Positions 38,757 through 58,944 of a stretch of DNA of 64,000 nt are shown here, one piece after another. The stretch's first letter is position 1, and every line of letters starts with the position of its first letter. The position numbers and the translations under genes were made by a program. Below the pieces are notes generated by a model that saw only the letters and a program-made list of their open reading frames with translations, was not told where the DNA came from and ran no database searches. The stretch is taken from positions 62,001 to 126,000 of the IMG/VR virus record IMGVR_UViG_3300045125_000071, one strand, 5' to 3'.

Positions 38757-39047
38757 GGTCGAGTGATGAAATTGGTAGCACATGCAAGACTTATACAATT
38801 TGAGTGCACAAGAGGAAACTCTTGATGTAGAATTCCGTAAATTCGGTGAACCCTGTAAAATGGGAATACCGAGCCAAGCATCAGCAATGATGAAGGTGTA
38901 GAGACTAGACACGGAACACCTAAATCGTAAGATATGGTGAAGGTATAGTCCAGAGTACAAACACAGCAATGTGGTAGTGAAAACTATAGTACTAAGAAAA
39001 TCTTGTGGGCAGTAATGCCCGTGTGGGTTCGAACCCCACCTCGACTA
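38757..39047 (+). tRNA. trnL: tRNA-Leu(UAA), intron-containing (exons 38757-38792 and 38997-39047)
   Basis: Spliced: GGTCGAG/CTCGACT acceptor, CAAGA-CTTAAAA-TCTTG anticodon arm, long variable arm GGGCA-GTAA-TGCCC, GTGGG-TTCGAAC-CCCAC T arm. Confidence 0.92.
38793..38996 (+). mobile_element. Group I intron (204 nt, trnL/IC3-like), no ORF
   Basis: Inserted after U34, ends in G; P AAATTCGGTGAA, Q AATACCGAGCCAAG, R GTAGAGACT, S AAGGTATAGTCC; P3 TTCCGT/ACGGAA. Confidence 0.9.
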
Positions 39048-39093
39048 CAGGACGTATTTTGTACTTTTTCGTGGTATTTATTATAAAAAATAA

Positions 39094-39723
39094 ATGCCAA
39101 GAAAAGAACATGATTATCACTACATTTATAAAACAACCAATCTATTAAATGGTAATTTTTATGTTGGGATGCACTCAACAAGTGATTTAAACGATGGTTA
39201 TTTAGGTAGTGGTGTAAGAGTAACAAGGTCAATAAAAAAACATGGTAAAAAAATTTTAGTATTGAAATACTCGAATTTTTACCCAATAGAAAAGCCTTAA
39301 AAGAAAGAGAGAAAGAAATTGTAAATGAACAATTTTTACAAAATGAAAATTGTTTAAACCTCCAACCTGGAGGTGGTGGTGGGTTTGTCAATAGTAACCA
39401 CAAAGAAAAATTTTTTGAAGGTTCCAAAAAATATCAGTTTAAGACTGAAGATGCTGCAAAAGGAAAAAAGATTTTTTAGAGCGTTATTATAATGACGAAG
39501 AATTTAGAAAATATTATAAATCAAGATTAAGACCTTATAATTGGACAGGTAGAAAACATAAAGAAGAAACAAAATTCAAAATAAGTATAATCAATTCTGA
39601 AAAACAAAAGGGAGACAAAAATTCCCAATTTGGTACTTGTTGGATTACCAATGGTATAGAAAACAAGAAAATAAAAAAACAGACGAAATACCTATGGGTT
39701 GGAGATTGGGTAGAGTAGTTTAA
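39094..39723 (+). mobile_element. GIY-YIG (Seg-like) homing endonuclease gene, frameshifted
   Basis: YIYKTTN...FYVGMHST...DGYLGSG; NUMOD-type KHKEETK; C-terminal GWRLGR. Confidence 0.85.
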
Positions 39724-39815
39724 AATATCGTACTTTTTGATTAGAGCAGTTGGGTTCATCAACCCTTCGGAATGCAGACAGCGGAGATGAGCGACCCGTC
39801 TAATCATTTTTACAT

Positions 39816-39888
39816 AGTCAGGTGGCGAAATTGGCAGACGCAATGTGAAACGGTACAACTTATACTAAAGTAACATGGAGAAGTCCAC
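39816..39888 (+). ncRNA. Truncated tRNA-scaffold element (5' part only)
   Basis: 70/73 identical to 43040-43112 but lacks T arm and 3' acceptor strand. Confidence 0.75.
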
Positions 39889-40094
39889 GTACTATTAAAA
39901 TAATTAAAAACAAAAAGGTATGAAAAAATATCATTTAACAATTTTGAGAAACGATAACTATGAAACTGTTTTTGGTGAAATGAGTTCAATAGTGAGTTTC
40001 TTACTGATAGAGAAAGAAATTGGAAATAAAACCCATATATTGTATTCGCGAGAACTAACTGAGTCAGAGTGGGAATTAGTTAAGTAAAACAAAT

Positions 40095-40223
40095 AGTCAG
40101 GTGGCGGAACGGGGTATCAGATACTCTTTGGCAGACGCTAATATGCTGAGTCCTTTTGGAGCTAACATCCTTTCGCGATTGGATTAAATGGGGGACGTAT
40201 AGGTTCGAATCCTGTCCTGACTA
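40095..40223 (+). ncRNA. tRNA-scaffold RNA 1 (129 nt)
   Basis: AGTCAGG...CCTGACT-A; D loop with inserted hairpin; ATAGG-TTCGAAT-CCTGT; branched insert. Confidence 0.85.
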
Positions 40224-40401
40224 CAAAAACTATAAATCGTGGAAAAAATAAAAGTAAAATATCCTCACTTATTAAAGTTCCTAATAGGGTTTTACAAGCC
40301 TCTTTAGCTTTTTATATGATTTATCATTTTAACTTTTTACACTTAATAGGTTATTTAATTTTATTAATAAGTCTTCATAGTATTAAAATGTATAACATAA
40401 T

Positions 40402-40425
40402 CAGGTTCGAATCCTGCCCTGACTA
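40402..40425 (+). repeat. Orphan 3' half of a tRNA-scaffold element
   Basis: CAGGTTCGAATCCTGCCCTGACTA with no upstream AGTCAGG partner. Confidence 0.75.
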
Positions 40426-40441
40426 CTTAAAATTTAAAAAA

Positions 40442-40633
40442 ATGGAAAGATATAAGTGTATTCGTAATTATCCTGGTGGACCTGGAAAAGACGTGGTAGT
40501 ATACCATCCACATAAAGAAGTGGCCTATAAGGATAGATATTTCAAACAAAAGAATGAAGAAAATTCTCGTAACTATATTTTTTTTGATGAAGACTACGTA
40601 AAAAAGTTTCCGAAATATTGGAAAAAAATATAA
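40442..40633 (+). CDS. Small hypothetical protein between array elements
   Basis: ATG at 40442 after an A-rich leader. Confidence 0.5.
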   Translation: MERYKCIRNYPGGPGKDVVVYHPHKEVAYKDRYFKQKNEENSRNYIFFDEDYVKKFPKYWKKI

Positions 40634-40641
40634 TCTAAAAT

Positions 40642-40745
40642 AGTCAGGTGGCGTAGTGGTATCGCAGCACCCTCACGGTTGAGACTAACGGCTAATGGCA
40701 CTCTGTATGATAAAGCTGACGCAGGTTCGATTCCTGCCCTGACTG
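40642..40745 (+). ncRNA. tRNA-scaffold RNA 2 (104 nt)
   Basis: AGTCAGG...CCTGACT-G; GCAGG-TTCGATT-CCTGC; insert closed by CAGC/GCTG. Confidence 0.85.
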
Positions 40746-40765
40746 CTAATCATATTATCTTCTTT

Positions 40766-41249
40766 GAAACAACTGTTGGTCAACACTGAACAAGTAACAG
40801 ATAAATCAGGTATGTAGAACCTAAAATTCTATAAAAGAATGGATGGTGTCTACATTGAAATTATCTACAATCCTCAACGTCAAGGTTGGAATTAATGACG
40901 AAATATAAAGGACAAAAACCTTTGCAGCTCCCACTGCTAAAGAGATGGGTAGAAACAAGTGTAGAACTATATTATCTGTTTAGTCTCATGGTTCTAAGAC
41001 ATGAGTAGGGTTTGGGTTGACGTGTAGTTTATTGTAAGAAAACTGAGCAGTACCTTTTATACTGGTACAATTAAATTTCCCGTCTTAGAGGGCGACAGTT
41101 GTTTCTTTCTTATGTGCTTTACACTAGAGATGGTAACACAGAATGTGTGTATTGCAGTCAATAAGATGTGTGTTGTTCTCTTGAGAAAGGAATGAAGGAG
41201 TAACAAGTTTATCGTTAACACCACTGGGGACTTCTCATCCCCATTTTTT
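40766..41249 (+). ncRNA. Large structured ncRNA candidate (about 480 nt), family unassigned
   Basis: Long-range helices 40766-75/41096-105 and 40796-804/40972-80, many local hairpins, no ORF, boxA-like motif upstream, terminator 41225-41249. Confidence 0.7.
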
Positions 41250-41273
41250 CTATTCTGACTAAAAATTAAAATT

Positions 41274-41429
41274 ATGGAAAACGAATTGGAGAAGAAAGAA
41301 AAATGTAAATGTGGTAATTCACCACAAGAATTGCATACATGTCCTTATGCGGAAGATGTACAAGGGGATAGTATAACCTTGTGCAATTGTTGTTCGGATT
41401 GTGAGAATCAATGCATTGCAGACATATAA
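41274..41429 (+). CDS. Small Cys-rich protein (51 aa)
   Basis: MENELEKKEKCKCGN...HTCPYAEDV...LCNCCSDCENQC; below ORF-track cutoff. Confidence 0.6.
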   Translation: MENELEKKEKCKCGNSPQELHTCPYAEDVQGDSITLCNCCSDCENQCIADI

Positions 41430-41590
41430 AAATAGCCAGGTGGTATCAGTTGTTTCTTTTTTATGTGTTAATGTTCATATTTTCTCTTGTTCACGTAACG
41501 TGAACAAAGAAAAATAAAACAGACCCACGCTTCCCATCTCGAAGGATAATGAGAGGGAATAATACGTCCTTTAAGGTCTGTTTTTAATAT

Positions 41591-41720
41591 AGTCAGTGGC
41601 GGAATTGGTTAGACGCGGTAGAGTCCGAAAGGTTAGCACTCTATGACTGCAAGCGAAACTCTGACTGCTAACACAAAGAGGAGTATAATTGCAATGCAGG
41701 TTCGAATCCTGTCCTGACTA
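41591..41720 (+). ncRNA. tRNA-scaffold RNA 3 (130 nt)
   Basis: AGTCAG(G missing)TGGCGGAATTGGTTAGACGC...GCAGGTTCGAATCCTGTCCTGACT-A. Confidence 0.85.
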
Positions 41721-41857
41721 CCGATGGTTAAAGTCCCTACGAGTTGTGACAATTAAAACGATGTTGTCATTATCGAAAGATACCTCACCATAAAACTCTG
41801 GGCAAACTCCCCTAACAGGAAACTGAACGGGTTGACAGCTTGGAAAGACAAGCAAAT

Positions 41858-41947
41858 AGTCAGGTGACGGAATGACATCCGTTAGAAAAGGTGTGAGGGC
41901 GAACGTGGTCGGAAAGCACCTAGTAGGTTCGAATCCTGCCCTGACTG
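41858..41947 (+). ncRNA. tRNA-scaffold RNA 4 (90 nt)
   Basis: Same acceptor and T arm; D stem ACGG/CCGT; insert closed by AGGTG/CACCT. Confidence 0.85.
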
Positions 41948-42065
41948 CTGATTCAGTTTGCCCGTGGTAACGGATTGATGGGAGAAATCCTTGCAATCTT
42001 CTGTAATCAAAATCCAATTATTGTCTCACTGGTAATTGGGCTAAATGTGAGAAAAAACGGGACAT

Positions 42066-42183
42066 AGTCAGGTGGCGGAATGGTGCCAAAGTATAAAACA
42101 AAGGGCAGGACACAAAGTCACTGAACACAGAGGAGAGGTTGAGGAACTCCCATTACTTACAGGTTCGAATCCTGTCCTGACTG
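42066..42183 (+). ncRNA. tRNA-scaffold RNA 5 (118 nt)
   Basis: Same scaffold; multi-hairpin insert closed by AAGTA/TACTT. Confidence 0.85.
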
Positions 42184-42276
42184 CTAAAACAACTAAGTTG
42201 ATTAACACCAGACAGTAACAAGAGGAAGCAGCACTATACCAGTTAAAGTCTGGGATTGTTACCTCATAATCTAAGA

Positions 42277-42342
42277 TATGAGTGGTTTGGGTTAATGTAT
42301 GACAGTTTTGAACAGAGAGTGGTTCGACTCCACTATTCATAC
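42277..42342 (+). pseudogene. Degenerate tRNA-like sequence
   Basis: TATGAGT/ATTCATA acceptor and AGTGG-TTCGACT-CCACT T arm; no credible D or anticodon arm. Confidence 0.4.
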
Positions 42343-42469
42343 TCTACTTAGAAGGCAGCTTAGTTGTTTTAAACTTATACTGGTTTTTGATACCGCTTTA
42401 CCGTTAGGAACGGGTATACCCCAAAACAGAATACAAAATGGTATGACAAGCCTGGAGAGACAGGCAAAT

Positions 42470-42609
42470 AGTCAGGTGGCGGAATTGGTAGACGCAGGGT
42501 CTACCTCAAGCGATTAGAGTATACGAGACGGGTGAAAGTTCCTCATTCCAAGTTGACCACGCTTACCCTTTAAAGGCAATTATACAGGTTCGATTCCTGT
42601 CCTGGACTG
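42470..42609 (+). ncRNA. tRNA-scaffold RNA 6 (140 nt)
   Basis: Leu-type D arm GCGGAATTGGTAGACGC; insert closed by AGGGT/ACCCT; one extra G in 3' strand. Confidence 0.85.
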
Positions 42610-42722
42610 CAAAAAATTAAACATATAGTGTATATCGATAAATGCATCGTTAATTATTTTGGCGATTATGGGTATTGTGTTTTTGGGGTATTGTTACACA
42701 AAAAGGTGGATTATAAAGATAT

Positions 42723-42799
42723 AGTCAGGTGGCTGAATTGGTGACAGAGGCACACCGTTAAACGACGGGTGGATGCGGGTTCGAATCCTGTCCTGACTG
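42723..42799 (+). ncRNA. tRNA-scaffold RNA 7 (77 nt)
   Basis: tRNA-sized but anticodon-position hairpin CCGT-TAAACG-ACGG is non-canonical. Confidence 0.8.
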
Positions 42800-42885
42800 C
42801 TAGGTAAGTTGCAAGTAAATGTCGTGATTCATGAACTTACGACCACTAGAAAGGAGCTGACTGCTGGGAAACGAGACAGCACTAT

Positions 42886-42962
42886 AGTCAGGTGGTGTAA
42901 TTGGTAGCACAACATCCGACAAGGGATGGAGGAGTCTAAAGGTTCGATTCCTGTCCTGACTA
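42886..42962 (+). ncRNA. tRNA-scaffold RNA 8 (77 nt)
   Basis: CATCC-GACAAG-GGATG 6-nt loop lacking U33. Confidence 0.8.
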
Positions 42963-43039
42963 CGATTAGAGGTATAGGGGTACCCTGAGGCGAAGTACAA
43001 GCCATGGTCACTGAATGTAAACCAACTCTAAACTAATTT

Positions 43040-43140
43040 AGTCAGGTGGTGAAATTGGCAGACGCAATGTGAAACGGTACAACTTATACTAAAGTAGCTT
43101 GGAGAAGTCCACTTTACAGGTTCGAATCCTGTCCTGACTA
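43040..43140 (+). ncRNA. tRNA-scaffold RNA 9 (101 nt)
   Basis: Same scaffold; insert duplicated at 39816. Confidence 0.85.
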
Positions 43141-43157
43141 CAAAAAACAAAAAAACT

Positions 43158-43337
43158 ATGAGCAACAATTCAAGTTCCAGTGGTATTGGTTTACCAACAA
43201 TTCTTTTTATTGTATTTTTGGTATTAAAACTAACTAATTACATTGATTGGTCATGGTGGTGGGTAACTTCTCCATTATGGATTTCTGCAATATTATATAT
43301 CATTCTCATTGTTGTTATTGAGAAAATTTTTCGTTGA
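43158..43337 (+). CDS. Small membrane protein (59 aa)
   Basis: MSNNSSSSGIGLPTILFIVFLVLKL...IDWSWWWVTSPLW. Confidence 0.7.
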   Translation: MSNNSSSSGIGLPTILFIVFLVLKLTNYIDWSWWWVTSPLWISAILYIILIVVIEKIFR

Positions 43338-43355
43338 CTTTGAAAATTAAATAAA

Positions 43356-43583
43356 ATGGACTATTCGGATGCAAGAATAAAAGCATTGTATCTTAAATGG
43401 AAGACATCTACATGTGACCAAGGAGAAAAGTGTTGGTGTCGTGTGATTAAATGCGAAGAATCATTGATGTATAAGGAGTATGAAGGTGATGATGAACAAG
43501 AATACAATGTGGTGGGCCCAGGGCTATTGGACAAAGAAACTGTTGAACATATTGTCAAACTTCACAACGATTCAATTAAGTGA
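43356..43583 (+). CDS. Hypothetical protein
   Basis: 75-aa ORF with C.QGEKCWC motif. Confidence 0.55.
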   Translation: MDYSDARIKALYLKWKTSTCDQGEKCWCRVIKCEESLMYKEYEGDDEQEYNVVGPGLLDKETVEHIVKLHNDSIK

Positions 43584-43599
43584 ATCTCAAAAAACAAAC

Positions 43600-43945
43600 A
43601 TGAACAAAGTCGTAATTAACGGAAACACAGTAAGTGGTAATTTTGCTGCCGACAACCTTATTATAATTAACGGAAAGGTTTTTGTCAATGGGAAAGATGT
43701 TACACCTGATGCAAAAGAAATAAACATTACCATTCAAGGGTCTGTTGAAAAATTGGAGGTCGATGCTTGTTCAAAAATAACCATTGATGGTGATGTCCAT
43801 AATGTCACAACCAAAAGCGGTGATGTCGATATTTCGGGGAACGTTAGCGGTAATGTTCAAACCATGTCTGGGTGATGTTGATTGCGGAAATGTCAGTGGT
43901 TCGATTTCAACAATGAGTGGTGACATTAAGCACAAACATATTTAA
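43600..43945 (+). CDS. Beta-solenoid-like hypothetical protein (one indel near 43870)
   Basis: Repeating GDV/GNV..V.T.SG units. Confidence 0.6.
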
Positions 43946-43952
43946 ATAAAAC

Positions 43953-44068
43953 AGTCAGGTGGCGGAGTGGTAGACGCAGAGTTTAGGGTTACTGATGTAG
44001 ATAGGTAACTGGTCACGCAGCGAGATAGCGTACTCTTTCTATCGCAGGTTCGATTCCTGTCCTGACTA
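43953..44068 (+). ncRNA. tRNA-scaffold RNA 10 (116 nt)
   Basis: Insert closed by AGAGT/ACTCT with GTTAC/GTAAC hairpin. Confidence 0.85.
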
Positions 44069-44137
44069 CTAATCTTTTTTAACTTCAGATTAACCATAAA
44101 AAGAAAAGTTAATGACATCTTGGAAAGACAAGAAAAT

Positions 44138-44227
44138 AGTCAGGTGGCGCAAGTGTGAAGAATAATCACCATGGGTAAGCGAGCTGTGGAAACACGGAGG
44201 TTGTGGGTTCGAATCCCACCCTGACTA
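44138..44227 (+). ncRNA. tRNA-scaffold RNA 11 (90 nt)
   Basis: Compensatory T stem GTGGG/CCCAC; hairpin in D loop; anticodon position is CTGTG-GAAA-CACGG. Confidence 0.85.
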
Positions 44228-44241
44228 CAAAAATAAAACTT

Positions 44242-44394
44242 ATGAAAAAGTATAACGTCCTATTGGGTATTATTGGGTATATTTTGACAGTGTGTGTAGC
44301 GCCAGCATTGTTTATTGAAAAACATTACATATTAGCACTAATATCTTTTATAGGGGGAATTGCAGTAATCGATTATAACAGAGGTGGCAATTAA
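44242..44394 (+). CDS. Small membrane protein
   Basis: Two hydrophobic segments. Confidence 0.5.
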   Translation: MKKYNVLLGIIGYILTVCVAPALFIEKHYILALISFIGGIAVIDYNRGGN

Positions 44395-44400
44395 TTACAT

Positions 44401-44547
44401 AGTCAGGTGGCGCAATGGTAGACGCTGTAAAAGTAAGATATGGGGATTGTGCACTCGGTGTTATCCTACGCACAAGGCTTAGATAGTTTTAGCAAAAACG
44501 GAAAGTCTTACAAAACTATTATACAGGTTCGAATCCTGTCCTGACTG
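44401..44547 (+). ncRNA. tRNA-scaffold RNA 12 (147 nt, longest)
   Basis: Same scaffold; branched insert. Confidence 0.85.
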
Positions 44548-44562
44548 CAAAAAATTAAAAAT

Positions 44563-44778
44563 ATGAAACAACCTAAAATACAAATTACGGACATCCACGG
44601 AGAAGATTGGGGTGTTAAAAAAGTCACACATCTTGGTTGGAATATTAATGGAAACTTAGTCGAAATAAAAGTTGACTTTATGGGTAATTATTACGACTTG
44701 ATGGTAATGTATGATATTGATTGTACTGGTACATTTACCAATATTCATGGTAACTTAAAAGGTAAACTAATTTTTTGA
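44563..44778 (+). CDS. Hypothetical protein
   Basis: 71-aa ORF between elements. Confidence 0.55.
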   Translation: MKQPKIQITDIHGEDWGVKKVTHLGWNINGNLVEIKVDFMGNYYDLMVMYDIDCTGTFTNIHGNLKGKLIF

Positions 44779-44788
44779 ATAAAAAAAC

Positions 44789-44895
44789 AGTCAGGTGGCG
44801 GAATGGTAGACGTAGAATCGGAAACCTAATGAGGTAGTGAACGAAAGATTTGGATAACTGCGGTTATCGTACAGGTTCGATTCCTGTCCTGACTG
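44789..44895 (+). ncRNA. tRNA-scaffold RNA 13 (107 nt)
   Basis: Variable-arm-like GATAAC-TGCG-GTTATC; anticodon arm replaced. Confidence 0.85.
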
Positions 44896-44909
44896 CAAAA
44901 AGGAAAAGT

Positions 44910-45173
44910 ATGATACTTTGGAAGTGGCAAAATGGAAGACAACATAATTGCGAATATCAGAAGTTCCCACTATGGTATTTTAAGTTATGGAAGTTTGGGT
45001 TTGATTGTTACATTCTCAGTTATAATGAGAACCAAACATTACCCAAACATAAAGACCCTATTGTGAATGGAAAACACTGGAGATTGAATATCGGATATGG
45101 TAATTCAAATTTTCTTTGTGAAAAATTAATTTTTGGTAAAAAAGATTGGATTATTATCCGTATATTTGTTTAG
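44910..45173 (+). CDS. 2OG-Fe(II) oxygenase-like small protein (3' end frameshifted)
   Basis: Y......LPKHKDP....HWRLNI (HxD motif). Confidence 0.45.
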   Translation: MILWKWQNGRQHNCEYQKFPLWYFKLWKFGFDCYILSYNENQTLPKHKDPIVNGKHWRLNIGYGNSNFLCEKLIFGKKDWIIIRIFV

Positions 45174-45258
45174 GCCTGATTTATATGAACATTCCCTTCA
45201 TATAATTGGGAAAACAAGAAAACTCTCTATTGGGTTTGCAAAGTATATGTAAGTAAAT

Positions 45259-45374
45259 GGTCAGGTGGCGAAATAGAGCAGACGCATGATGATAAAGTAG
45301 GGTCCGAATGTACTCGGAGGAAATTGATTCAATTAGGTTGCAAACTAATATAGGTTCGAATCCTGTCCTGACTA
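45259..45374 (+). ncRNA. tRNA-scaffold RNA 14 (116 nt)
   Basis: GGTCAGG/CCTGACT; three-hairpin insert (TCCGA/TCGGA, AATTG/CAATT, ATTAG/CTAAT). Confidence 0.85.
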
Positions 45375-45491
45375 CGAGGGAAATAATCTTAACCAGCCTC
45401 AAATGTTGAATCTTGTTGACCATTCCTGGTTTATACAAGTGCGAACGGGCCTAATGATGGTAAGGTTGACAGCGGGGAAAGACCCGACCAT

Positions 45492-45577
45492 GGTCAAGTA
45501 GCTTATAATGGGTATATGGGTATTAACTCTTCCTTTAAGTAGGTTTAGCATTGTGGGTTCAAATCCCATCTTGACCG
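45492..45577 (+). ncRNA. Divergent tRNA-like element (86 nt)
   Basis: GGTCAAG/CTTGACC acceptor, GTGGG-TTCAAAT-CCCAT T arm, no canonical anticodon arm. Confidence 0.65.
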
Positions 45578-45591
45578 CAAAATAAAATGTT

Positions 45592-46206
45592 ATGAAAAGC
45601 AAGACAGTGGAACGCATCATGGGAGAAATGGAAAAAGACCCGTGGTATGTCAAACTAAGAAGGTGGTGGAATCTGAAGGTGTGGACATGGAAATGTTTAT
45701 CCAGGAAATATTGGGACAAAACACATTCTGGTTATATCTTTAGAAAAAGAATCATGATTTCAAAAGAAACATTGGAAGCAGTTCGGGTTGGAATACTAAC
45801 GGACAAGCAATTGAATGAAGCAATTGAACACTATACTAAGTTAGAAGAACTTCTAAGATGTCATGGAGAAGTATATTCTCTTGTATGGAGCAATGTTTTT
45901 TATATACTTCATACGCTTGAAGGATATCAAACATCAAGAAAAAAGAGGGTTGATTGGGAAGGGATATACAATAACCTGATGGTGGAGGTAGTATATCTGG
46001 AGTTTGGAATCATCATAGTAATGCCAATCGTAAAAGGAGTTGTCCACGGAACCATCTTCTCCTTTCCTTTTTCATATAAAACAATTATTATGTTTTCAAA
46101 AACAAGAGTCAAGTTCAGACTTAAAGGAAGTGACGAAATCCAATTGGGGTTTTTGGAAAAAAATAAAGAATACAAAAAACAAATATCGTGTTTTATCCAT
46201 GGATAA
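45592..46206 (+). CDS. Hypothetical ORF(s); probably several small genes read through
   Basis: 204-aa ORF with internal ATG-led segments. Confidence 0.35.
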   Translation: MKSKTVERIMGEMEKDPWYVKLRRWWNLKVWTWKCLSRKYWDKTHSGYIFRKRIMISKETLEAVRVGILTDKQLNEAIEHYTKLEELLRCHGEVYSLVWSNVFYILHTLEGYQTSRKKRVDWEGIYNNLMVEVVYLEFGIIIVMPIVKGVVHGTIFSFPFSYKTIIMFSKTRVKFRLKGSDEIQLGFLEKNKEYKKQISCFIHG

Positions 46207-46270
46207 AAAATCTGGATATTGTATTTCTTTGTTAGATATGTTGGAAAAATTTAAATATTTAATAGAACAT

Positions 46271-46345
46271 AGTCAGGGTGGCTGAATGGCAACGGCAGTT
46301 CACGAGGTGTTACGAAGAATGCAGGTTTGAATCCTGTCCTGACTG
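46271..46345 (+). ncRNA. tRNA-scaffold RNA 15 (75 nt)
   Basis: AGTCAGG/CCTGACT-G; T loop TTTGAAT; non-canonical central hairpin. Confidence 0.8.
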
Positions 46346-46548
46346 TAAACAACCTGTACCCTTGGGAAACTCGTATTATTCAGCAGGGTCCAGCTTCAAC
46401 GCTGGACGTTCTACTAAAGAGGAGCGGAGTTTTAAGGAACGGCTGATAGATAAGCAGGTTGGTCCCGATATAAAAGGGTAAGAGAATAGGGACACTTTTT
46501 GGTGAATTGATTTAAAAATTTTACATTTGTCATGTAAAAGTTACTACC

Positions 46549-46829
46549 ATGATATTACCAACAGATTATACCGAATTAACAATTAAAGAAAGAAATTCAA
46601 GTAAGGGAACAATACATAAAAGAACAAAATAACAATTGTATGTATTGTGGTGAAAATTTATATGCTCCACCACCCGAAAGAATTACAAATAAACCCATCG
46701 ATTGGAATTTATTTCCACCAAATTTTTTAAAATATCCAATACATCTCCAACATTGCCACAAACAAATATGACCGAGGTGCTGTTCATAGTTATTGTAATG
46801 CGGTAATGTGGCAATACGAGGGTAGGTAA
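46549..46829 (+). CDS. Endonuclease VII-like zinc protein, frameshifted
   Basis: CMYCG...IHLQHCH...HSYCN; TACATTTG promoter element at 46522-46529. Confidence 0.5.
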
Positions 46830-46850
46830 TTATAAAACAAATCAAATGCC

Positions 46851-49550
46851 ATGGAAGGTAAATTTTATTCCGAAGAAGAAATGAAACACTTATTGGACAC
46901 AATGTATGCCCAAACAATTAAAGGTTTCATGGAATGGGTTGAAAAAGAAACAATAATTATCAATAGAGACACGAAAAGAACCAATATTAGATTGTGTTAC
47001 GGTTTAAAACCAGACCCCAAAAAGCCAAGCGAATACATTTTTCCAAAATTGAAGGAACATGGAATAACCATGAACAACAAATTTGAAATAACCGATGGAA
47101 TATAGAATTGTTGAAAAGTTAAGGTGATTTTCACAGAAGAAGAGTCTTTTTGTCCCCAATATAAAAAATGGTTGTTTTGGCGAAGTTTGAAAGAACTGAT
47201 GCTCAAACCATTGAGGAATTTTTATACCACATATGATGATGCGTTATCATTCTTGAAAGAAAAAATATCAAAAACCGTGTATCATTGTAAATGTGTTGAG
47301 AAACAAAGAATTGACAGAAATAAAAATTCACAATATCACCAAAGAGTAATAATGAAATACAGAGAAGTTAAAAAACTGCTCAATGATGCTGGATTTGCAC
47401 CCTTGAGGCAATTCAAACATCTTCAGAACTTGAAATGTTAAGTTTTGGCATCCAACAATCAAAGGTGAAATCTTTGTCGATTTCGGTCTTGATGTTAATA
47501 TACCACAAGATATATTGGATGGTAAAGAATTCTCATATAACGATGAGAAGGAAGAATGGTTGATGAATACCAATGTCAATATGGTTTCGTTTGACATAGA
47601 TGTTTCAATGTCATTTATGTCTGAAGATATTTTGGATACTTGTGGAAATACAAGCGAAAATAAAATCATTTTTATTTGGCGAAGATGTTGATTTAACGCC
47701 AAAGGTTCTATCAATTACGAAAAGCAGGACCGCGATGTGGGTTTATGAAATTTCAAAAAGAACACTCTGAAGAAATGAATAAGTTCTTTGCATGGGTTGG
47801 AAACATTCTTTCCCATACTTGAGAAATACAATTTAAAACTCGAAGCATTTTCAACAAGTGGTAATGAAGGAACATTATATAGAAATATTGCGTTAAGATT
47901 CTCGAAATCAAATATGGAATATATTGATTTTTATCTTGATATTTTAACATGGAGAAAGAGTATCACAATAAATATTGAACCAGGTTTTCTTGAAGATTCT
48001 GCATTTTTGAAAAGTGATTGTTCTCTTGGAGAATTTAAATCGGAATTGGAAAAACAATGGGATGTGTTAATTAAATTTGAAGAAAAAACAAAAAATTTTA
48101 GGTTTTAAAATGTCTGAAAAATACAAGAGAAATTACCATTCGGTAAGTTTTAAAATAAAAATTGACTCGTGGCGTAACTGGTTAACGCGGCTCGCTCATA
48201 ACGAGAAGATTGTGGGTTCAAGTCCCTCCGGAGTCAACTTTAAAATTCGTATAAAAAGGCGATAATAAAAAATATCGACAAATAATACGAATTATTGATT
48301 TTATCTATATTTGAATTACAAAAACAAAGTATCATGAAAATCAATCTACAAGAAAGGCTTGACCTTGAAAAGAAAAAAGACATGGAGGTCTTGATTCCGT
48401 TAAGGAAGTCAAACTTCTGTTAGCTGGAGACAGAATCTGAAGATACCAGGATTTTAAGGGACTTATCCGAAAATTCGAAATCAACAGGGTTGAAAAGATT
48501 ACCCAAACGGCATTGGAGATTGAAAAAATAGAATCCCAATACACTGGAAATGTCTTTACCATTTCAATCAAATCAAAAAACTTGCTGTCGAGTATCGTTT
48601 GAGATTTTTGAACACTCAGGTATTTCACTGGTAAGTTTGATGTTGAGGTTGCCGCAAAAATAAAAGAATTCGGAAAGGATAATAATATTTCATTTCAAGA
48701 TTATCAACTGAAAAACAGTTTCTTTGTTCTTGGTCCAAAAGAACAATTTGACCTCAAAAGAAGAAAAGTATATTGACCCAAGACCAGTCGACCCAGTTCT
48801 ATTCTACAGAGATAGATGAGAACCATTATCGTTTGATTCACAAATGGGAGTCAGACTTCACCGTTATGAGGTACCTGAGGGTTTCAAATGGAAAAATACT
48901 CTAAATCTATTTTTGGTACACCATTGTTTGCATGTCTTCCAATATTTCGCATTTTTGGTTGGACTTTTATATAGACTATCAATTGTTACAATTAAGCGAT
49001 TAGTAATATATTACTTAATTTATTTTTCATAGCTTTCCCAACGTTAGGATTGGTCACATTCAGAAATATCAGACAGAAAATCAGATGGTGATTGGGATGC
49101 TATTCGAGAATTCTTTACAACTGGCAATTGGACAAGCTCAAAAAATCTAATACGATGAAAAAAGCAATCATTTTTGGATACTTTATTGGAATGGCGATTA
49201 CTGACATATTTCATGTTCCATCTTGGTGTGTGGCTTGAGAAACGGTGATGGTGAAATGGAAATAAGTATACGTGAAGCTAATTTAAGTGTCAAAGAAGCG
49301 ACAGAAAAGGGATATTTAGACCCAAACATGATGTATTCACAAAAATATCAATGTTCAGTATACCTTTCATAAAACAAGGTTTGGGTATGATATTCAAGAA
49401 GACACTCTTGATGTGACAGACATTTCATGAAACTCGTAGGTAACATATTTATGTAAATGAAATTTGTTATTATATCATTGTTTATAGCGTTTGCAATTGT
49501 CAGACTTATTGCCGTTCTGATTAATGACAATGATAAAAAGGGATAATATG
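46851..49550 (+). other. Run of small hypothetical ORFs (46851-47105, 47124-47441, 47788-48108, 48334-about 49150 and others), many fragmented
   Basis: ATG-led same-strand ORFs with phage-like composition; no recognisable motifs. Confidence 0.4.
48164..48236 (+). tRNA. tRNA-Met(CAU) (or Ile2 if lysidine-modified); one C apparently missing in acceptor
   Basis: CTCG-CTCATAA-CGAG anticodon arm, GGG-TTCAAGT-CCC T arm, GACTC/GAGTC acceptor. Confidence 0.8.
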
Positions 49551-49552
49551 TT

Positions 49553-49625
49553 GCGGCCATGATGTAATGGATTAGCATGAAAAACTTCTAATTTTTCCGT
49601 ACAGGTTCGAATCCTGTTGGCCGTA
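49553..49625 (+). tRNA. tRNA-Arg(UCU)
   Basis: GCGGCCA/TGGCCGT acceptor; AAAAA-CTTCTAA-TTTTT; ACAGG-TTCGAAT-CCTGT. Confidence 0.9.
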
Positions 49626-49702
49626 CAAAATTTTTATTACTTTTGGTTCGATTCATGATATTGGTATAATTTAAAATAAATTCGAGTTTTGTTGGGGGCT
49701 AT

Positions 49703-50383
49703 GTGACTTTTTTAAATTTTGACCATACTTATAATAAGTATGGCAAATTTAAACACAAAAAAAAGTATCATTTTATTTACAAAACAACAAATTTAAAAAC
49801 TGGTCATTTTTATATTGGGATGCACTCAACCAATAATTTAAATGATGGTTATTTGGGTAGTGGTAAAAGATTAACACGTTCCATAAGAAAGTATGGTAAA
49901 GAAAATTTTAAATTAGACATTTTGGAATTTTTACCAGATAGAAAAACATTAGAATTAAAAGAAAAAGAATTAGTCAATGAAGAACAATTAAAAGACCCAT
50001 TATGCATGAATATATGCGTTGGGGGTCAAGGTGGTTTCATATCAATAGAAGGATGCACTAAAGGTGGTGTAATCGCAGCAAAAATTCATGTTGATAGAAT
50101 AAAAAATGATTCAGAATATAGGGAAAAACATATATTGAGGTTTAGTGAAAAAGTAAAAAAACTTTGGAGAGATGGTGTTCTTAAACAACACGATTTTAGA
50201 GGTGGAAAACGGAAAGAAGAAACTAAAAGAAAAATAAGTGAAACAAATAAAATAAAACAAAAAGGAATTTTAAATTCACAATTTGGAACTCGATGGATTA
50301 CTGATGGTTCTGAAAATAAAAAAATAAAAAATACCGAGACAATACCAAATGGATGGGTCTTAGGTAGAAAAATGAAAAAATAA
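49703..50383 (+). mobile_element. GIY-YIG (Seg-like) homing endonuclease, paralogue of 39094
   Basis: FIYKTTN...FYIGMHST...DGYLGSG...GGQGG...GWVLGR. Confidence 0.88.
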
Positions 50384-50404
50384 TTTGAATTAAAATAAAA
50401 AACT

Positions 50405-50743
50405 ATGAAAACAATTTTATTAATTTTTGCATTTTTGTTAATCGGAACAACATCAACATTGAACACAAAGACGATTACTCATGAAATTTTTTATGAGAAA
50501 CTTGTTGAATATGATATAAAACATCCTGATGTTGTTTTTGCTCAAGCACTTCTGGAAAGTGCAAATTTCACATCCAAATTGTTCAAAACACAAAACAATT
50601 TATTTGGTATGAAATTGGCTATGAAAAGAAAAACAACCGCTGTTGGTAAAAATAAAAGTGGTTATGCAAAATACAATAGCGTTGACGATAGTATATATGA
50701 TTACTACTTATTCCAGGAATATGCTATGAGGAAAAAGAAATGA
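50405..50743 (+). CDS. Glucosaminidase (GH73-like) cell-wall hydrolase with signal peptide; 3' end frameshifted
   Basis: VVFAQALLES...NNLFGMK...YAKY. Confidence 0.75.
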   Translation: MKTILLIFAFLLIGTTSTLNTKTITHEIFYEKLVEYDIKHPDVVFAQALLESANFTSKLFKTQNNLFGMKLAMKRKTTAVGKNKSGYAKYNSVDDSIYDYYLFQEYAMRKKK

Positions 50744-50853
50744 GTAAAAAGGAATACATATCATATATCGGTAGAAACTATGCATATGATAAAGCATATG
50801 TGCAAAAACTAAATAAAATAATTAAGAATTATACGGAGATTCTGTATAAGGAC

Positions 50854-50926
50854 TAGGGTGTATATCAATCGGTAGATTTCGCGTTTTGGGTACGTGAGGT
50901 TGCCAGTTCGAGTCTGGCCACCCTAA
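50854..50926 (+). tRNA. tRNA-Pro(UGG)
   Basis: TAGGGTG/CACCCTA acceptor; CGCGT-TTTGGGT-ACGTG; GCCAG-TTCGAGT-CTGGC. Confidence 0.9.
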
Positions 50927-50928
50927 CA

Positions 50929-50958
50929 AAAAAGGTGCAATAATTAGCACCTTTTTTT
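50929..50958. terminator. Bidirectional terminator
   Basis: aaaaaggtgc-aataatta-gcaccttttttt between convergent units. Confidence 0.75.
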
Positions 50959-50977
50959 ATTTAAAATATTGCAGATA

Positions 50978-51166
50978 TTATTCTGCTGGATTTTCAGGTG
51001 CGACAGCTTTTTTAGAGGTCACTGACCATACAGCACCAACCAATGTCATAATTGCACCGAGAGCTTCTTGTAACATTCCATCGTCTAAAAGACCTTTGGT
51101 AACCAAAAAGCCACCTATGAATGTCAACCCGTGTCTAATAACACCTAATACTTGTTCTTTTGTCAT
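50978..51166 (-). CDS. Small two-TM holin-like protein
   Basis: VLGVIRHGLTFIGGFLV...GAIMTLVGAVWSV; adjacent to hydrolase. Confidence 0.55.
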   Translation of the reverse strand: MTKEQVLGVIRHGLTFIGGFLVTKGLLDDGMLQEALGAIMTLVGAVWSVTSKKAVAPENPAE

Positions 51167-51639
51167 AATTGTTTTTTTAAGATTTATTATATACCATAAA
51201 TATCTTATACTTATAAATAAACAACATTATGTTTTCAATTATTGCAGATATGACGATGAAAATCGTCGATTTGATTAATCAAAATGAAAAATTAAAAAAG
51301 AAGACAAAGAAAAAATAAGCAATGTTTTAAATGAAATATCTGAAATTATTTTAGATACATCGGTTAAATTAAAAAAAGACGAATATCCACATAATAATTG
51401 TATCGTTTTGGAGCGTCTATCAAATAGTTTACATTTTAGTTTGATTGATTATATCGAACAAAACGAATTGGATAAATTACATCAACTACTAGTTGAATCT
51501 TCAAATATTGAAAAATTATACGCTTATAGACATAATAAAGATATTATCAGAGATTTAATGAAAATTTCTGGTGAATTTAAAGCTATGTCAATTTTGTTAT
51601 TAGTTTAATTTTTCTTATATTTTTATAAAAATCATTTGT

Positions 51640-52104
51640 ATGGTTGACAAATTCAGAACGTTATATGGTAGAACAATTCCCAACATTGTTGAGTATATAA
51701 AAAATTTCATGTCTGAAAATCCGAATTCAGAATTATTAATTGGCGCGGATTCCCAATCTTATGAGAATAGGATAACAAAATACGGTATTGTTATTGCACT
51801 TTATACACAAGGTAAAGGGGCGCACGTTGTTTGCATGAGAGAAATTGTTCCCATTGAACATAATATGCAAATGAGATTAATGAATGAAGTTTGGAAATCG
51901 GTTGAGGTTGCTGAATTCTTAAAGGAAAACAATTTACCGAAACCTAAATTCATTGATATTGATTTGAATCCAGACCCAAAATATAAATCAAATACAATAT
52001 TGCGCCAGGCTATTGGTTTAGTTGAGGGTATGGGTTATAATGTGAGATACAAGAAGAACGGCGCAGCTATTCAGTATGCGGCAAATCATTTGGTAAGAAT
52101 TTGA
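51640..52104 (+). CDS. RNase H-like YkuK/DUF458 family protein
   Basis: LIGADSQ...GKGA...RLMNEV.KS...IDIDLN...KSN. Confidence 0.75.
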   Translation: MVDKFRTLYGRTIPNIVEYIKNFMSENPNSELLIGADSQSYENRITKYGIVIALYTQGKGAHVVCMREIVPIEHNMQMRLMNEVWKSVEVAEFLKENNLPKPKFIDIDLNPDPKYKSNTILRQAIGLVEGMGYNVRYKKNGAAIQYAANHLVRI

Positions 52105-52153
52105 TACTTTCTTTTTAGAAATAATTTCTTATAATTAAACATATATAATTAAC

Positions 52154-52548
52154 ATGGAAAAATTTGAACAATTTGAACCGAAAACAAAAAATAGATTTAT
52201 TATAAATGTTGTGGGAACCGATATCCCGCATCATTTATTTAAAAGCTATAAAATGTATAATCAGGGAAAAACAATTGTTGTTGATGTGGAATTTTATGAA
52301 ACAACTGAATGGACATTCAACCCCAAGAGTTTTTTGATATTGAGGATTTATTGATTCAACACGTAAACGCTGTGGGCGATGTAATCACAACATTAGATTT
52401 TAAGGTTGATGAAATTGAATATGAACAAGTCGGTAGTTATGCTGATGATGGATTATTAATGAATAAACTAAAGTTTATAACTAGCAATTGTGAACTAATT
52501 AAAACAGATAGTGAAATCATAAAAACAAAAGAAAATGAAGTGTATTAA
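52154..52548 (+). CDS. Hypothetical protein, one indel (tail-tube-like FEPK.KNRF start)
   Basis: Fragments 52154-52354 and 52309-52548. Confidence 0.4.
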
Positions 52549-52816
52549 AGTAATCAAAGAATTGAAAACCCAGAAGATAGGGGATATCAGTAGAGTATCT
52601 AATGAAGATGCTGATGAAAAAGTAAAGTCTGGATATTTTATGTATGCCCCAAAGTCAGAATGGAAACAGATGACAAAACAAAAGGTTGAATCCACTGAAA
52701 CATCTAAAGAAAACACTAAAACATTGAAAAAAATCAAAGAAATAACGAAACCGATAAAAAAACTAAAAATCCTAAAAAAACAAAGCAAAATAGTTGATTA
52801 TATCAGAATTAGTTCT

Positions 52817-52859
52817 TACTTTTGTATTGTTATCGGAAACGAAACAAGCTCTTTGAGAA
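52817..52859 (+). promoter_or_regulatory. Bacteroidota -7 element plus boxA-like motif
   Basis: TACTTTTG 52817-52824; GCTCTTTGAG 52848-52857. Confidence 0.55.
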
Positions 52860-52864
52860 AAAAT

Positions 52865-53045
52865 AAGCAAACGAAGACTGTGGTGTAACCCCACGGTATA
52901 TGAATCCTAAGACCCGTTTTATTCGCGGTATGGGCGGTGAAGGTAGAGACCACTATAAGTTGGGAGTTGCTGCCTAATACGAAATGTGGCCGCTGGCGCA
53001 GGGATGTGTTAGTCATGATGTGTAACGGGCACGAAAAGTTTGCTT
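52865..53045 (+). ncRNA. Structured ncRNA candidate (about 180 nt)
   Basis: Ends pair (AAGCAAAC/GTTTGCTT); CTGTGG/CCACGG hairpin; CCCGTT/AACGGG; GC-richer than flanks; U tract after. Confidence 0.6.
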
Positions 53046-53058
53046 TTTTTTAAAATAT

Positions 53059-53125
53059 TTTGGTAATTCGATTTTTTTACTTACCTTTGTTTAAGAATCG
53101 GAAAACGATAAAAGTTCTTTGAAAA
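53059..53125 (+). promoter_or_regulatory. Full Bacteroidota sigma-ABfr-type promoter plus boxA
   Basis: TTTG 53059-62, 19 nt, TACCTTTG 53082-89; GTTCTTTGAAAA 53114-53125. Confidence 0.75.
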
Positions 53126-53129
53126 TATA

Positions 53130-53975
53130 AATGGGCGGTCTATAGTCCAGTAATGACTCGAAAGAGTTGTTATAAAAATAAACTATGAAAGTAGTATAAA
53201 GTGGTCTCCTTGGTTAAAAGAGACTGCGGTTTATCGCAAGATGAACTTGAGTAGAAAAGCGAGACATCGTTTGACCCGTAGTAGCGAGGGTAACACTGTA
53301 GTGAAAGGGGTTGAATGACTGGGCGATGTGGGTCGTCTGGTTGAGGTGGGAACACCAATAAGAGTAACTCGTAGGGTAGTTGCAAGAAATATGGTCATCC
53401 AACTATATGATTGCGGTATCCAATACAATGGGTGTCTTAAAGTTGAAAGACATGATGAAAAACAGGTGGTGCTGTTATCATCCTTAGTTAGAATCTACCA
53501 AGGTTCTGATTATGAAGAAATCCAAAAGTATGGAGGTAGGGATATCTCAGAGAGTAGTTGTGTATTTTGCGGTTCAAAAGACTGTGAAGCACTGGTGACG
53601 GACCACTACTTTCAAAATCCACAAACCAAAAACTGTTACTTTTGACTAACAAGTTTAAAAAAGCAGGAAAAGTGTCCGTCAGTCATCAGAGACAGGTGGC
53701 TACTCAGTAACGAGTTGTTCGTTGCCACAAAGGGTCCCAAGCCCAATGTGATTTTTGTGAAAGTTCTCTAATCCCGCAAGGATGAGTTGGTGAGGCATCA
53801 TCGAAGAGCAGCGATTAGCAAGAGAGTATCTGGTGACTCAAGGATTGGTTAATCTAATTGACCGCCATTGATTGGTACTACTCAAAAGGTAGTGGATAAG
53901 AAGAGAACCTCAAAAGGGATAATGCTTCGAAAGTCAATCACAAGAACTTGTAATCTCAGAGTTTTTACTTTAATT
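53130..53975 (+). ncRNA. Giant structured ncRNA (about 850 nt), probably GOLLD-like
   Basis: Own promoter and terminator; GGCGGTC(53134-40)/GACCGCC(53860-66) long-range helix; numerous hairpins; phage tRNA-island context. The family name is inference from size and context. Confidence 0.65.
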
Positions 53976-53979
53976 GCTT

Positions 53980-54005
53980 ACCCAACCCAATCGGTTGGGT
54001 TTTTT
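53980..54005 (+). terminator. Intrinsic terminator
   Basis: acccaacc-caatc-ggttgggt-ttttt. Confidence 0.85.
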
Positions 54006-54076
54006 ATTTTTATATATTTATGAATATATTTGGCTCGAATTTTGTACTTTTACCATAAAATTCATATATTTATTTT

Positions 54077-54535
54077 ATGAAAGAAAACATTATCAACTTG
54101 AATAAAGCAATGCCCAAAAATAAGTCAGACAAACAATCAATAACCTCCAGGTTAATTGAATTTATAATATATGTGATGAGTGCTGCTGTCATCATGTATT
54201 ATCTTTTTAAAATTGTTTTTGGGTCACCAGGTCAACTTAAAGAAAACAATGAAACTATTGGTGCGATAAATAGTAAAATAGATTCGATATATGCATTACA
54301 AGATTTAACGCAACAAGGGATAACTAATTTAAAAGATGACCAAATCGAATTAAAAAATATGATTAACAATAATCAGATAATGATTAAAGAGAATAATGAG
54401 GAAATTTCAGCGTTAAAAAAAGTTGTTAATCAAAAAATCAATATGGCTAATCAAACTATTAATACACAAAATAGAAGAATAGTTGAATTAGAACAAAAAA
54501 GTTACAATAGTCTTGATAGTTTTTTTAGAGCATAG
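54077..54535 (+). CDS. Membrane-anchored coiled-coil hypothetical protein
   Basis: One TM segment then heptad-rich region. Confidence 0.6.
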   Translation: MKENIINLNKAMPKNKSDKQSITSRLIEFIIYVMSAAVIMYYLFKIVFGSPGQLKENNETIGAINSKIDSIYALQDLTQQGITNLKDDQIELKNMINNNQIMIKENNEEISALKKVVNQKINMANQTINTQNRRIVELEQKSYNSLDSFFRA

Positions 54536-54567
54536 ACAAAATAAAAATAAATAATTTTTTATGACTT

Positions 54568-55029
54568 ATGAAAAAAGTAATTCTATTATTATTTTTATTA
54601 ATTTCATATGTACAAGTAAATTCTCAAGATTTTATATCTAAAAATAGATATGCTGGGGATACTCTTTTGATTTTATTCATAATTGGTGGGGAACTAAATA
54701 CAGATACGGGGGTACAACAAAAAAAGGGATAGACTGTAGCGCTTTTACATTGAAATTATTTAATGATGTTTATGACGTTAATTTACCCAGAACCGCACAC
54801 GAACAATACAGAGCAACAAAAGAATCTCAAAAGAAGATTTAAAAAACGGAGATTTGGTTTTTTTAGAACCAGATACAAGTCTGGTTGGCATGTCGGTGTT
54901 TATTTAATCGATGGTTGGTTTGTACATTCAAAATCAAGGGTTGGGGTTGCTATTGACAATTTGAGAAATCCTTCTTATACTAGAATTTACTATGGTGCTG
55001 GTAGACATAATGAAATAAAACAATTTTAA
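54568..55029 (+). CDS. NlpC/P60 peptidase, frameshifted
   Basis: WWGTKYRYGG...GIDCSAF...LPRTA.EQ...VFF...HVGVY...FVHS. Confidence 0.85.
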
Positions 55030-55086
55030 TTTTCCTTATTTTTTAAAATAAGGTGGTGGAAGCATAACTATAACGGTTTGCCCAAT

Positions 55087-55112
55087 AAAGTCAGGTTTTC
55101 CTGACTTTTTTA
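55087..55112 (+). terminator. Intrinsic terminator whose stem equals the array acceptor stem
   Basis: AGTCAGG-TTTT-CCTGACT-TTTTT. Confidence 0.75.
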
Positions 55113-55142
55113 TTTGATATATTTATTTAATAAAGAGTTATA

Positions 55143-55811
55143 ATGGGTAAATTTATATTAACAGAAGAAGATAGGAATAGAATAAAAAAACTACATAATA
55201 TACAAGAACAATCAACAATTTTAGCACAAGTAAAAGGTGACTATACTGCTAGCAATTGTGATGAATTACATGCGTTCCAAGGTACTGGTGGTAAAACAAT
55301 TGGAAATATGAATGGTATCGTTAAAGATAAGATTTTGGAATTAAACAAACAAGGTCATAAAGTAAAAGTCACAAAAGTTAGTGTTGTTGTAAAAGGAATG
55401 AATGTTATTTGGACGGTTGATATAAGTAAAAGTGATGATAATAAAAATTGGGTAGGGTTTACTAGTAGAGGTGCTGGATGTAATAGTGATATTCAAAGAA
55501 GATGGAATAATGATAGTGTCGGCAATGGTGCTGCCTCAATAAAAAATAAAATTGAAAGTTCTGGATATGGTGCTGTTGATGAAATTGAATTAGTAAACAC
55601 ATTTACACATACGAGTGATGAGAATTCTTTCATTCAAGGATTTTATAGGTATTGTTTAATGGAAAATAATCAATCAACAAATATACAACCATCAACCAAT
55701 CAGCAAACAAACCAAGAAGAATATATTGTAGCATCATCAAATGATGCGAACACTTTTTACAAGAAATTAAAAATAAAACAAGAAATCAAAATATTGATAC
55801 AAGCTCAGTAA
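55143..55811 (+). CDS. Hypothetical (possible internal head) protein; continues to about 56040 after indel
   Basis: MGKFILTEEDRNRIKKLH leader. Confidence 0.55.
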   Translation: MGKFILTEEDRNRIKKLHNIQEQSTILAQVKGDYTASNCDELHAFQGTGGKTIGNMNGIVKDKILELNKQGHKVKVTKVSVVVKGMNVIWTVDISKSDDNKNWVGFTSRGAGCNSDIQRRWNNDSVGNGAASIKNKIESSGYGAVDEIELVNTFTHTSDENSFIQGFYRYCLMENNQSTNIQPSTNQQTNQEEYIVASSNDANTFYKKLKIKQEIKILIQAQ

Positions 55812-56042
55812 AAATTTCTTTTGAACCAGCGAGTAATTATTACAAATTAAAAATAAAAAAAGGAAAAACAGCTGTAAAACTTTTAGTATTAACATTAAAT
55901 ACAATTGATGATGATAAAGCTAACGTGTTTCCATCGAAAGATAATATATTAGCAAAAAATCCTGGTTCATATGTTATTAACCAAGAAAGATTTTCAGATA
56001 CCAATGGTATGAGAAGTTGGGCATTAATTGCTATTATCTGAT

Positions 56043-57515: not shown

Positions 57516-57564
57516 ATTTTAATAAATATTTGGTTTTTTATGTTCAATTTGTTATATTTTAAAT

Positions 57565-58321: not shown

Positions 58322-58366
58322 CATTTACAATATCCTAAATATTTATTAATTATATACAAAAACAAT

Positions 58367-58552
58367 ATGGTAAAGAAATTTTTAGATTTTTTGAAATTGT
58401 CTTTTGCAAAAACACCAATTACTAAAAATGTAGTTGATGTCGAATTGAAAAATTCCGTATCTTTGTCATCTGAACCAGCAACAGATGTTGTTGAAAAAAA
58501 GAAAAGAGGTAGGAAGAAAAAGAAGAGTCTGCACAATAATATATGGGGGTGA
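58367..58552 (+). CDS. Small hypothetical protein
   Basis: Late motif upstream; basic KKKRGRKKK tail. Confidence 0.45.
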   Translation: MVKKFLDFLKLSFAKTPITKNVVDVELKNSVSLSSEPATDVVEKKKRGRKKKKSLHNNIWG

Positions 58553-58941: not shown

Positions 58942-58944
58942 CTC

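Follow-up and report, generated by a model that had tools for sequence, protein, structure and literature searches.

The question raised by this locus is whether a gene-free stretch of about 490 nt, lying among the tRNA-like genes of a large phage, encodes a structured non-coding RNA and, if so, whether this RNA is a relative of the ROOL and GOLLD families or something else. The stretch (40760-41249) belongs to a window of 64,000 nt, positions 62,001 to 126,000 of the IMG/VR record IMGVR_UViG_3300045125_000071, and all coordinates below are those of the window unless a locus is named. An earlier note, made from the sequence alone, had described it as an ORF-free RNA of about 480 nt with nested helices, starting at a boxA-like motif and ending in a terminator, and had read it as a large structured RNA, either a distant ROOL/GOLLD-type relative or new. 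We find that what the note observed is confirmed. Its interpretation is supported in part only: the RNA is large, structured, non-coding, on the + strand, without an Rfam family and embedded in the tRNA-like array, and the nested outer helices are the true architecture, but it is not a distant ROOL or GOLLD relative, and the 480 nt are three modules rather than one fold.

A non-coding stretch inside a phage RNA island

The window is part of a 251-kb viral record with about 31% G+C, which encodes a T4-type capsid (Gp23) and portal (Gp20). From about 39000 to 59000, the + strand carries an RNA island. At least 19 tRNA-like units (39000-46350, for instance 40642-40746, 41592-41720, 42469-42606 and 43953-44068) share one acceptor stem (TAGTCAGG...CCTGACTA), a tRNA-Leu-like D arm and a T arm, whereas their anticodon-arm region is hypervariable and often 30-60 nt too long. 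They look like a natural "tRNA scaffold" carrying variable inserts. ARAGORN calls only 5 tRNAs in the window. The island also holds five regular tRNAs, a full GOLLD match at 53550-53962 (+) (307.7 bits, against a gathering score of 150) and a tmRNA at 58545-58944 (+) (85.5 bits), and a gene for a CCA-adding enzyme (PolyA_pol head, RNA-binding and HD domains) lies beside it at 56043-57515 (-). A GIY-YIG homing-endonuclease-like gene (49703-50383, +) and a decayed paralogue (39100-39700, +; 73-81% identical DNA blocks, frame broken) are found at the two ends of the tRNA-like array. A small conserved hairpin, TGACA-GCYUGG-ARAGA-CMRGC, with a covarying stem, lies 3-5 nt before several tRNA-like units (41832-41860, 42443-42472, 44112-44140 and 45467-45495, +), and also scores as a sigma-70-like TTGACA-17-AATAGT site.

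The features of the locus, all on the + strand, are as follows.

40642-40746: upstream tRNA-like unit with a 33-nt longer anticodon arm and no encoded CCA (Rfam tRNA 44.5 bits; repeat family D1/D2); its 3' end lies 20 nt before P1
40759-40769: leader motif CTTCTTTGAAA (boxA-like), abutting P1
40766-41105: module A, copy c1; P1 is 40766-40778 with 41093-41105 (13 bp)
40779-40791: P2 5' strand (GTCAAC, bulged A 40785, CTGAAC), pairing with 41010-41021
40796-40804: P3 base, 5' strand, pairing with 40972-40980
40805-40971: P3 interior, a copy-specific variable domain with four small hairpins
40985-41005: P4 hairpin CTCATG-GTTCTAAGA-CATGAG; loop bases 40993-40999 (UCUAAGA) pair with 41083-41089
41010-41021: P2 3' strand (GTTTGG GTTGAC)
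41022-41078: P5 variable domain, including the GTACC/GGTAC hairpin
41079-41092: P6 mini-hairpin CCC-GTCTTAGA-GGG, presenting the partner UCUUAGA
41106-41165: module C, a hairpin domain closed by CTTAT/ATAAG
41166-41249: module B, with stem GTGTT/AACAC, candidate pseudoknot TGAGAA (41182-87) with TTCTCA (41232-37), terminal hairpin 41225-41243 and U-run 41244-49
41274-41429: 51-codon ORF rich in Cys (CxC...C...CNCCSDCENQC), directly after the terminator-like hairpin, without Pfam match
41434-41475: remnant joining a tRNA-like 5' piece (AGCCAGGTGGTAT) to the P1 3' strand of module A (CAGTTGTTTC) and the start of module C (21-nt repeat with 95% identity)
42186-42370: module A, copy c2 (185 nt), a paralogue with short P3 and P5, starting 3 nt after a tRNA-like unit

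Every helix listed in the note was found at, or within one base of, its stated place: GAAACAACTG (40766-40775) with CAGTTGTTTC (41096-41105), GTCAAC (40779-84) with GTTGAC (41016-21), AACAGATAA (40796-804) with TTATCTGTT (40972-80), CTCATG/CATGAG (40985-90/41000-05), GTACC/GGTAC (41050-54/41064-68), and the small hairpins inside 40805-40971 (AGGT/ACCT, ATTCT/AGAAT, CGTCA/TGACG, AAAGG/CCTTT). These small hairpins and GTACC/GGTAC lie in domains that differ completely between members, so that they have no comparative support. By folding energy alone, the whole 506-nt stretch was not special (z -0.96 on the + strand, -1.63 on the - strand).

The possibility that an indel hides a protein gene, which the note had named as a way to be proven wrong, was examined. 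All six frames carry 7-12 stop codons, and only short ORFs of 40-55 codons exist. In the conserved core of the family described below, stops occur in 5 of 6 frames and one-base indels break the sixth, while compensatory pair changes are present. A decayed protein-coding gene, which has nothing in its favour beyond length, is therefore already contradicted.

A comparison with Rfam 15 gave no family for the stretch: no model, GOLLD and ROOL included, reached E 10 on 40300-41700 or on c2, and neither GOLLD nor ROOL was matched in seven loci holding members (searched at E up to 1 for ROOL). No tRNA model hit was found inside 40760-41249.

Module A and its relatives

While reading the array, we noticed at 42186-42370 a shorter look-alike (c2) with exchanged pairs in the same helices. 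It had been missed by blastn-short within the genome, and MAFFT misaligned c1 against c2 because of the 167-nt insert. A first scan pattern, ATGAGT..GGTTTGGGTT, gave 46 hits, none of which had the context, so that all were chance. A degenerate pattern common to both copies then found one homologue in IMG/VR, locus L148 (loci are hereafter named L plus a number, and sequencing runs X plus a number). A pattern from the three copies found 13 viral loci, and a tightened version about 30 metagenome loci and 2 contigs in metagenome bins, mostly from freshwater and wastewater. A pattern from the 5' block, which does not constrain the loops, added five more viral loci. In total, about 45 members were collected. 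By contrast, blastn of the stretch and of a typical member against 50,697 cultured-phage records (INPHARED) found nothing, blastn and a covariance model against the 26 records closest by capsid gave only chance-level hits, and a search for relatives with the 246-aa neighbouring protein found none.

Carriers include phages with and without a Gp23 match, with one copy each, whereas the present phage has two copies, from different sub-lineages: c1 is nearest L174 and L207, and c2 shares its P3 interior with L196. Members are 136-336 nt long (median about 200). They have a conserved core, with P1 stacked on P2 and a tight three-way junction of P2, P3 and P4. The consensus reads AACAACUACUG / AUUAAC-A-CUAAAC / A / GUAAC...GUUAC / CUCACA-G(U)UCUAAGA-UGUGAG / UG / GUUUAG-GUUAAU / GU...variable.../ CCU-ACUUAGA-AGG / CAGUAGUUGUU.

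RNAalifold recovered P1, P2, P3 and P4 without guidance, with compensatory changes in 24 of 37 pairs, and changes on both sides in 9 of 12 P1 pairs. A covariance model limited to P2-P4 (R1), in whose seed c2 but not c1 was included, scored 44 sequences at E below 0.01. In the 251-kb genome, it gave 89.6 bits for c2 and 36.2 bits (E 2.8e-5) for c1, the latter score being lowered by the P3 insert, and it found nothing in the GOLLD region. On the 44 aligned sequences, 96.3% of cells are paired and 14 of 23 core pairs changed on both sides, including all 7 pairs of P3 and 4 of 6 of P4. P2 is 99% paired, with CG/UA exchanges, and in c1 all 12 P2 pairs are standard or G-U. None of 500 shuffles reached any of these measures, and slid controls pair at 28-41%. 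With the ends set by the family, c1 and c2 fold far better than shuffles (z -3.41, 1 of 100 shuffles, and -3.20, respectively), and into the family helices.

The P4 loop UCUAAGA is complementary to (U)CUUAGA next to P1 (7 bp in c1, 40993-99 with 41083-89), which would close the molecule into a ring. CTTAGA is invariant in members found with a pattern that did not ask for it, and L224 has UAUAAG with CUUAUA, a double change that keeps the pairing. This is one event, so that the contact is likely but not proven. Moreover, all homologues were collected with patterns from the conserved core, so that the invariance of the P4 loop and of the J4/2 region is partly due to ascertainment. P6, the mini-stem presenting the partner, is only 2-3 bp, weakly supported, and its closing pair fails in many members.

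The P3 interior and P5 share nothing between members, with the exception noted for c2. In 3 of 39 members, c2 among them and c1 not, they hold a T-arm-like hairpin. In c1, the P3 interior is 167 nt, the largest seen, so that about 170 nt of module A is a copy-specific insert. An abundant wastewater relative in DNA runs X3 and X4 (contig depth about 125) joins 40790 directly to 40977, thus lacking the 186-nt P3 interior, and has the array pieces in a different spacing. The remnant at 41434-41475 looks like the scar of a deleted third copy. Behind it (41476-41585) lie a long hairpin and a 10-bp stem (AAAACAGACC/GGTCTGTTTT), and 41516-41585 is conserved in the X3/X4 relative.

Such observations, together with helix sequences conserved beyond what pairing needs and inserts swapped wholesale, could suggest a DNA-level element (a recombination or cassette-exchange site, or a replication element). 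We consider this very unlikely, since G-U wobble pairs are frequent and one-sided, which fits RNA on the + strand only, a compensatory loop-loop change exists, RNA libraries hold contigs confined to the element (see below), and no recombinase is linked.

Modules B and C, expression and surroundings

Module B recurs in eight distinct homologues, after module A or apart from it, with invariant blocks UGUGUUGUUCYCUUGAGAAAGGAAU and ACAACACAGRGGACUUCUCAUCCYC. The loop of its last hairpin (UUCUCA) is complementary to UGAGAA, suggestive of a pseudoknot-like element. Modules B and C have almost no covariation, however, with only one covarying pair in B, and together they show no folding-energy signal (z +0.16). 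The last hairpin is the terminator of the note: 6 pairs followed by TTTTTT, terminator-like by the scan, with a conserved loop. A U-run also follows in L174 and L207, so that it can terminate transcription. In L159, L182 and L212 the same hairpin has no U-run, and in the L159 and L182 copies a tRNA-like unit follows at once, so that termination is not its only role. Module C has homologues only in L174, L194 and L207, where it lies downstream of B. The three modules (A 340 nt, C 60 nt, B 84 nt) thus occur in another order (A-B-C in L174 and L207) or apart, although here they may still leave the polymerase as one transcript.

We next considered whether the stretch is a cis-acting leader (riboswitch or attenuator) of the 51-codon ORF at 41274-41429. 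It lies directly upstream of this ORF, ends in a terminator-like hairpin, and module B has two mutually exclusive pairings, a local hairpin and a pseudoknot. However, in other members module A is followed by tRNA-like units, module B or unrelated sequence, and no downstream or neighbouring protein recurs (at most 3 loci share any ORF family). A leader function is therefore improbable.

Evidence for transcription was sought in RNA runs. The one run that holds pieces of this array (X1) has depth 0 over 40773-41166, but coverage of the phage there is very low. No transcript evidence exists for this copy. For the family, RNA library X7 holds a 160-nt contig at depth 79, lying wholly inside the L182 member, with depth 0 in the flanks. 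Further contigs lie on the neighbouring B module and on another short stretch of the locus, and metatranscriptome X8 holds part of another member, whereas raw-read runs X14 and X15 gave nothing. This supports stable RNA species, but X7 is labelled "METAGENOMIC RNA-Seq", contig ends are not RNA ends, and DNA carry-over cannot be excluded.

Concerning the surroundings, P1 begins about 0-3 nt after the 3' end of a tRNA, or after a leader GTTCTTT(G/A)A(AATATT). In six of 36 members a tRNA-like unit begins 5-7 nt after P1, and the unit type of the present array follows the family copies of L150, L195, L198, L208 and L226. The leader motif TTCTTTGAA is conserved in front of about half of the members (TTCTTT[GA]A within 70 nt upstream in 17 of 36). 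It is not specific to module A, since GTTCTTT[GA]A also precedes tRNAs and ORFs in other loci, and it is not enriched in the window. It may be an antitermination site or part of a promoter.

Interpretation and comparison with known RNAs

Our explanation is that the stretch is a non-coding, + strand RNA locus inside the tRNA/ncRNA island of a 251-kb T4-like phage, made of three conserved modules, of which module A belongs to a previously unclassified family of structured RNAs found in the tRNA regions of large uncultured phages from fresh water and wastewater. Overall we hold it to be likely, a judgement that weighs mainly the identity of module A. Family membership, fold, strand and absence of coding are what the analysis shows, and of these we are highly confident. 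That the RNA is made as part of the island transcript and freed by tRNA-processing enzymes (RNase Z or P) at the abutting tRNAs is inferred from the geometry, and is about as likely as not. In this view, c1 would be freed at its 5' side only, the module B hairpin and U-run would end the transcript, A, C and B may stay together as one RNA of about 490 nt, and the phage CCA-adding enzyme would finish the CCA-less upstream units. As for function, nothing points to one directly, and it is no more than a tentative guess that the RNA acts in trans as a stable, nuclease-resistant constant scaffold displaying variable domains, in tRNA or translation takeover or in counter-defence. We favour such a scaffold, with low confidence, because helix sequences are conserved beyond pairing while the peripheral domains are replaced wholesale. 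The neighbouring tRNA-like units have the same design, with constant arms and a hypervariable anticodon-arm region.

A further reading, doubtful but of much interest if true, is that of a self-assembling RNA. The two complementary 7-nt loops could pair between molecules rather than within one, building dimers or closed multimers as in ROOL and GOLLD cages, with the variable P3 and P5 domains displayed on the outside. In a related reading, a boxA-bound 5' end held at the polymerase would help to close the long-range P1 helix, as in rRNA operons.

A self-cleaving or otherwise catalytic RNA that processes the array, or a selfish RNA element associated with ribozymes (RAGATH-like), remains possible but unlikely. 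The fold is compact and pseudoknotted, and members lie near ribozyme-like elements. In L148, a twister-P1-like hit (6073-6148, -; 37.6 bits, E 9e-5, below gathering) lies 3.5 kb from the family copy. In L152, a complete 172-kb T4-like phage, a 183-nt RNase P RNA-like element (7793-7975, +; RF00373, 35.6 bits, E 1e-8 in the local search, below gathering) lies between a tRNA and the family copy. It has the P4 strands GAGGAA..UC and AACAGAA..GGCUAA but lacks most of the specificity domain, and none was found in the genome of the present phage. On the other hand, few conserved unpaired nucleotides lie in the junctions, conservation being mostly in helices and in the two loops, and no cleavage-site signature was seen. 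The resemblance to RAGATH-15 (RF03150) is a weak local one, on a hairpin region of L148 only (12.9 bits, E 0.36, against a gathering score of 199.5), and is not evidence of homology. The ncRNA arrays of UG27 reverse transcriptases (bioRxiv 10.64898/2026.09.22.753630) were also rejected, as the genome has no reverse transcriptase and the motifs differ.

Complex RNA folds of more than 150 nt with tertiary contacts are rare, and nearly every one found so far has opened new biology. What is new here is a family absent from Rfam 15, although it may be among the 10,006 unnamed viral RNA candidates of PMC10690425, with strong covariation, a testable loop-loop contact and a design of constant core plus swappable peripheral domains. 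It lies in an island that also holds GOLLD, a tmRNA and at least 19 tRNA-like units built on the same constant-plus-variable principle. It gives a small, tractable object (c2) for structure work, and a handle on what large phages do with their RNA islands.

Among known signals, the rrn boxA is GCUCUUUAACAA in E. coli, with GUUCUUUGAAAA-type variants in other bacteria. The leader GUUCUUU(G/A)A(A)CAA is one mismatch from the E. coli boxA in L165 and L186, and sits at the head of untranslated RNA genes. Binding of NusB-NusE to the GUUCUUUGAA leader, and an antitermination role, are suggested by sequence likeness only.

GOLLD (RF02032) is likewise a large ornate non-coding phage RNA near tRNAs, of unknown function, with conserved core parts beside variable parts, and one lies 12 kb downstream in the same island. 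However, family A shares no sequence or model similarity with it, is 2-4 times smaller (136-336 nt against about 600-800 nt), has a different architecture (a three-way junction plus one loop-loop contact), and is distributed independently of GOLLD, occurring without it in 4 of 5 carrier records. ROOL (RF03087), of about 580 nt, is a phage- or prophage-associated structured RNA near tRNAs, whose quaternary structure is built by loop-loop contacts (bioRxiv 10.1101/2024.12.08.627333), but its model did not match at E up to 10. Despite the similar setting, membership of either family is very unlikely.

The closest likeness is to the unexplained stable RNAs of the phage T4 tRNA region (species 1 and 2, rnaC and rnaD), small stable RNAs encoded among phage tRNA genes and released by tRNA-processing enzymes. 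Without similarity to any cultured phage in INPHARED, family A is larger than these RNAs, and has a likely tertiary contact supported by one compensatory change.
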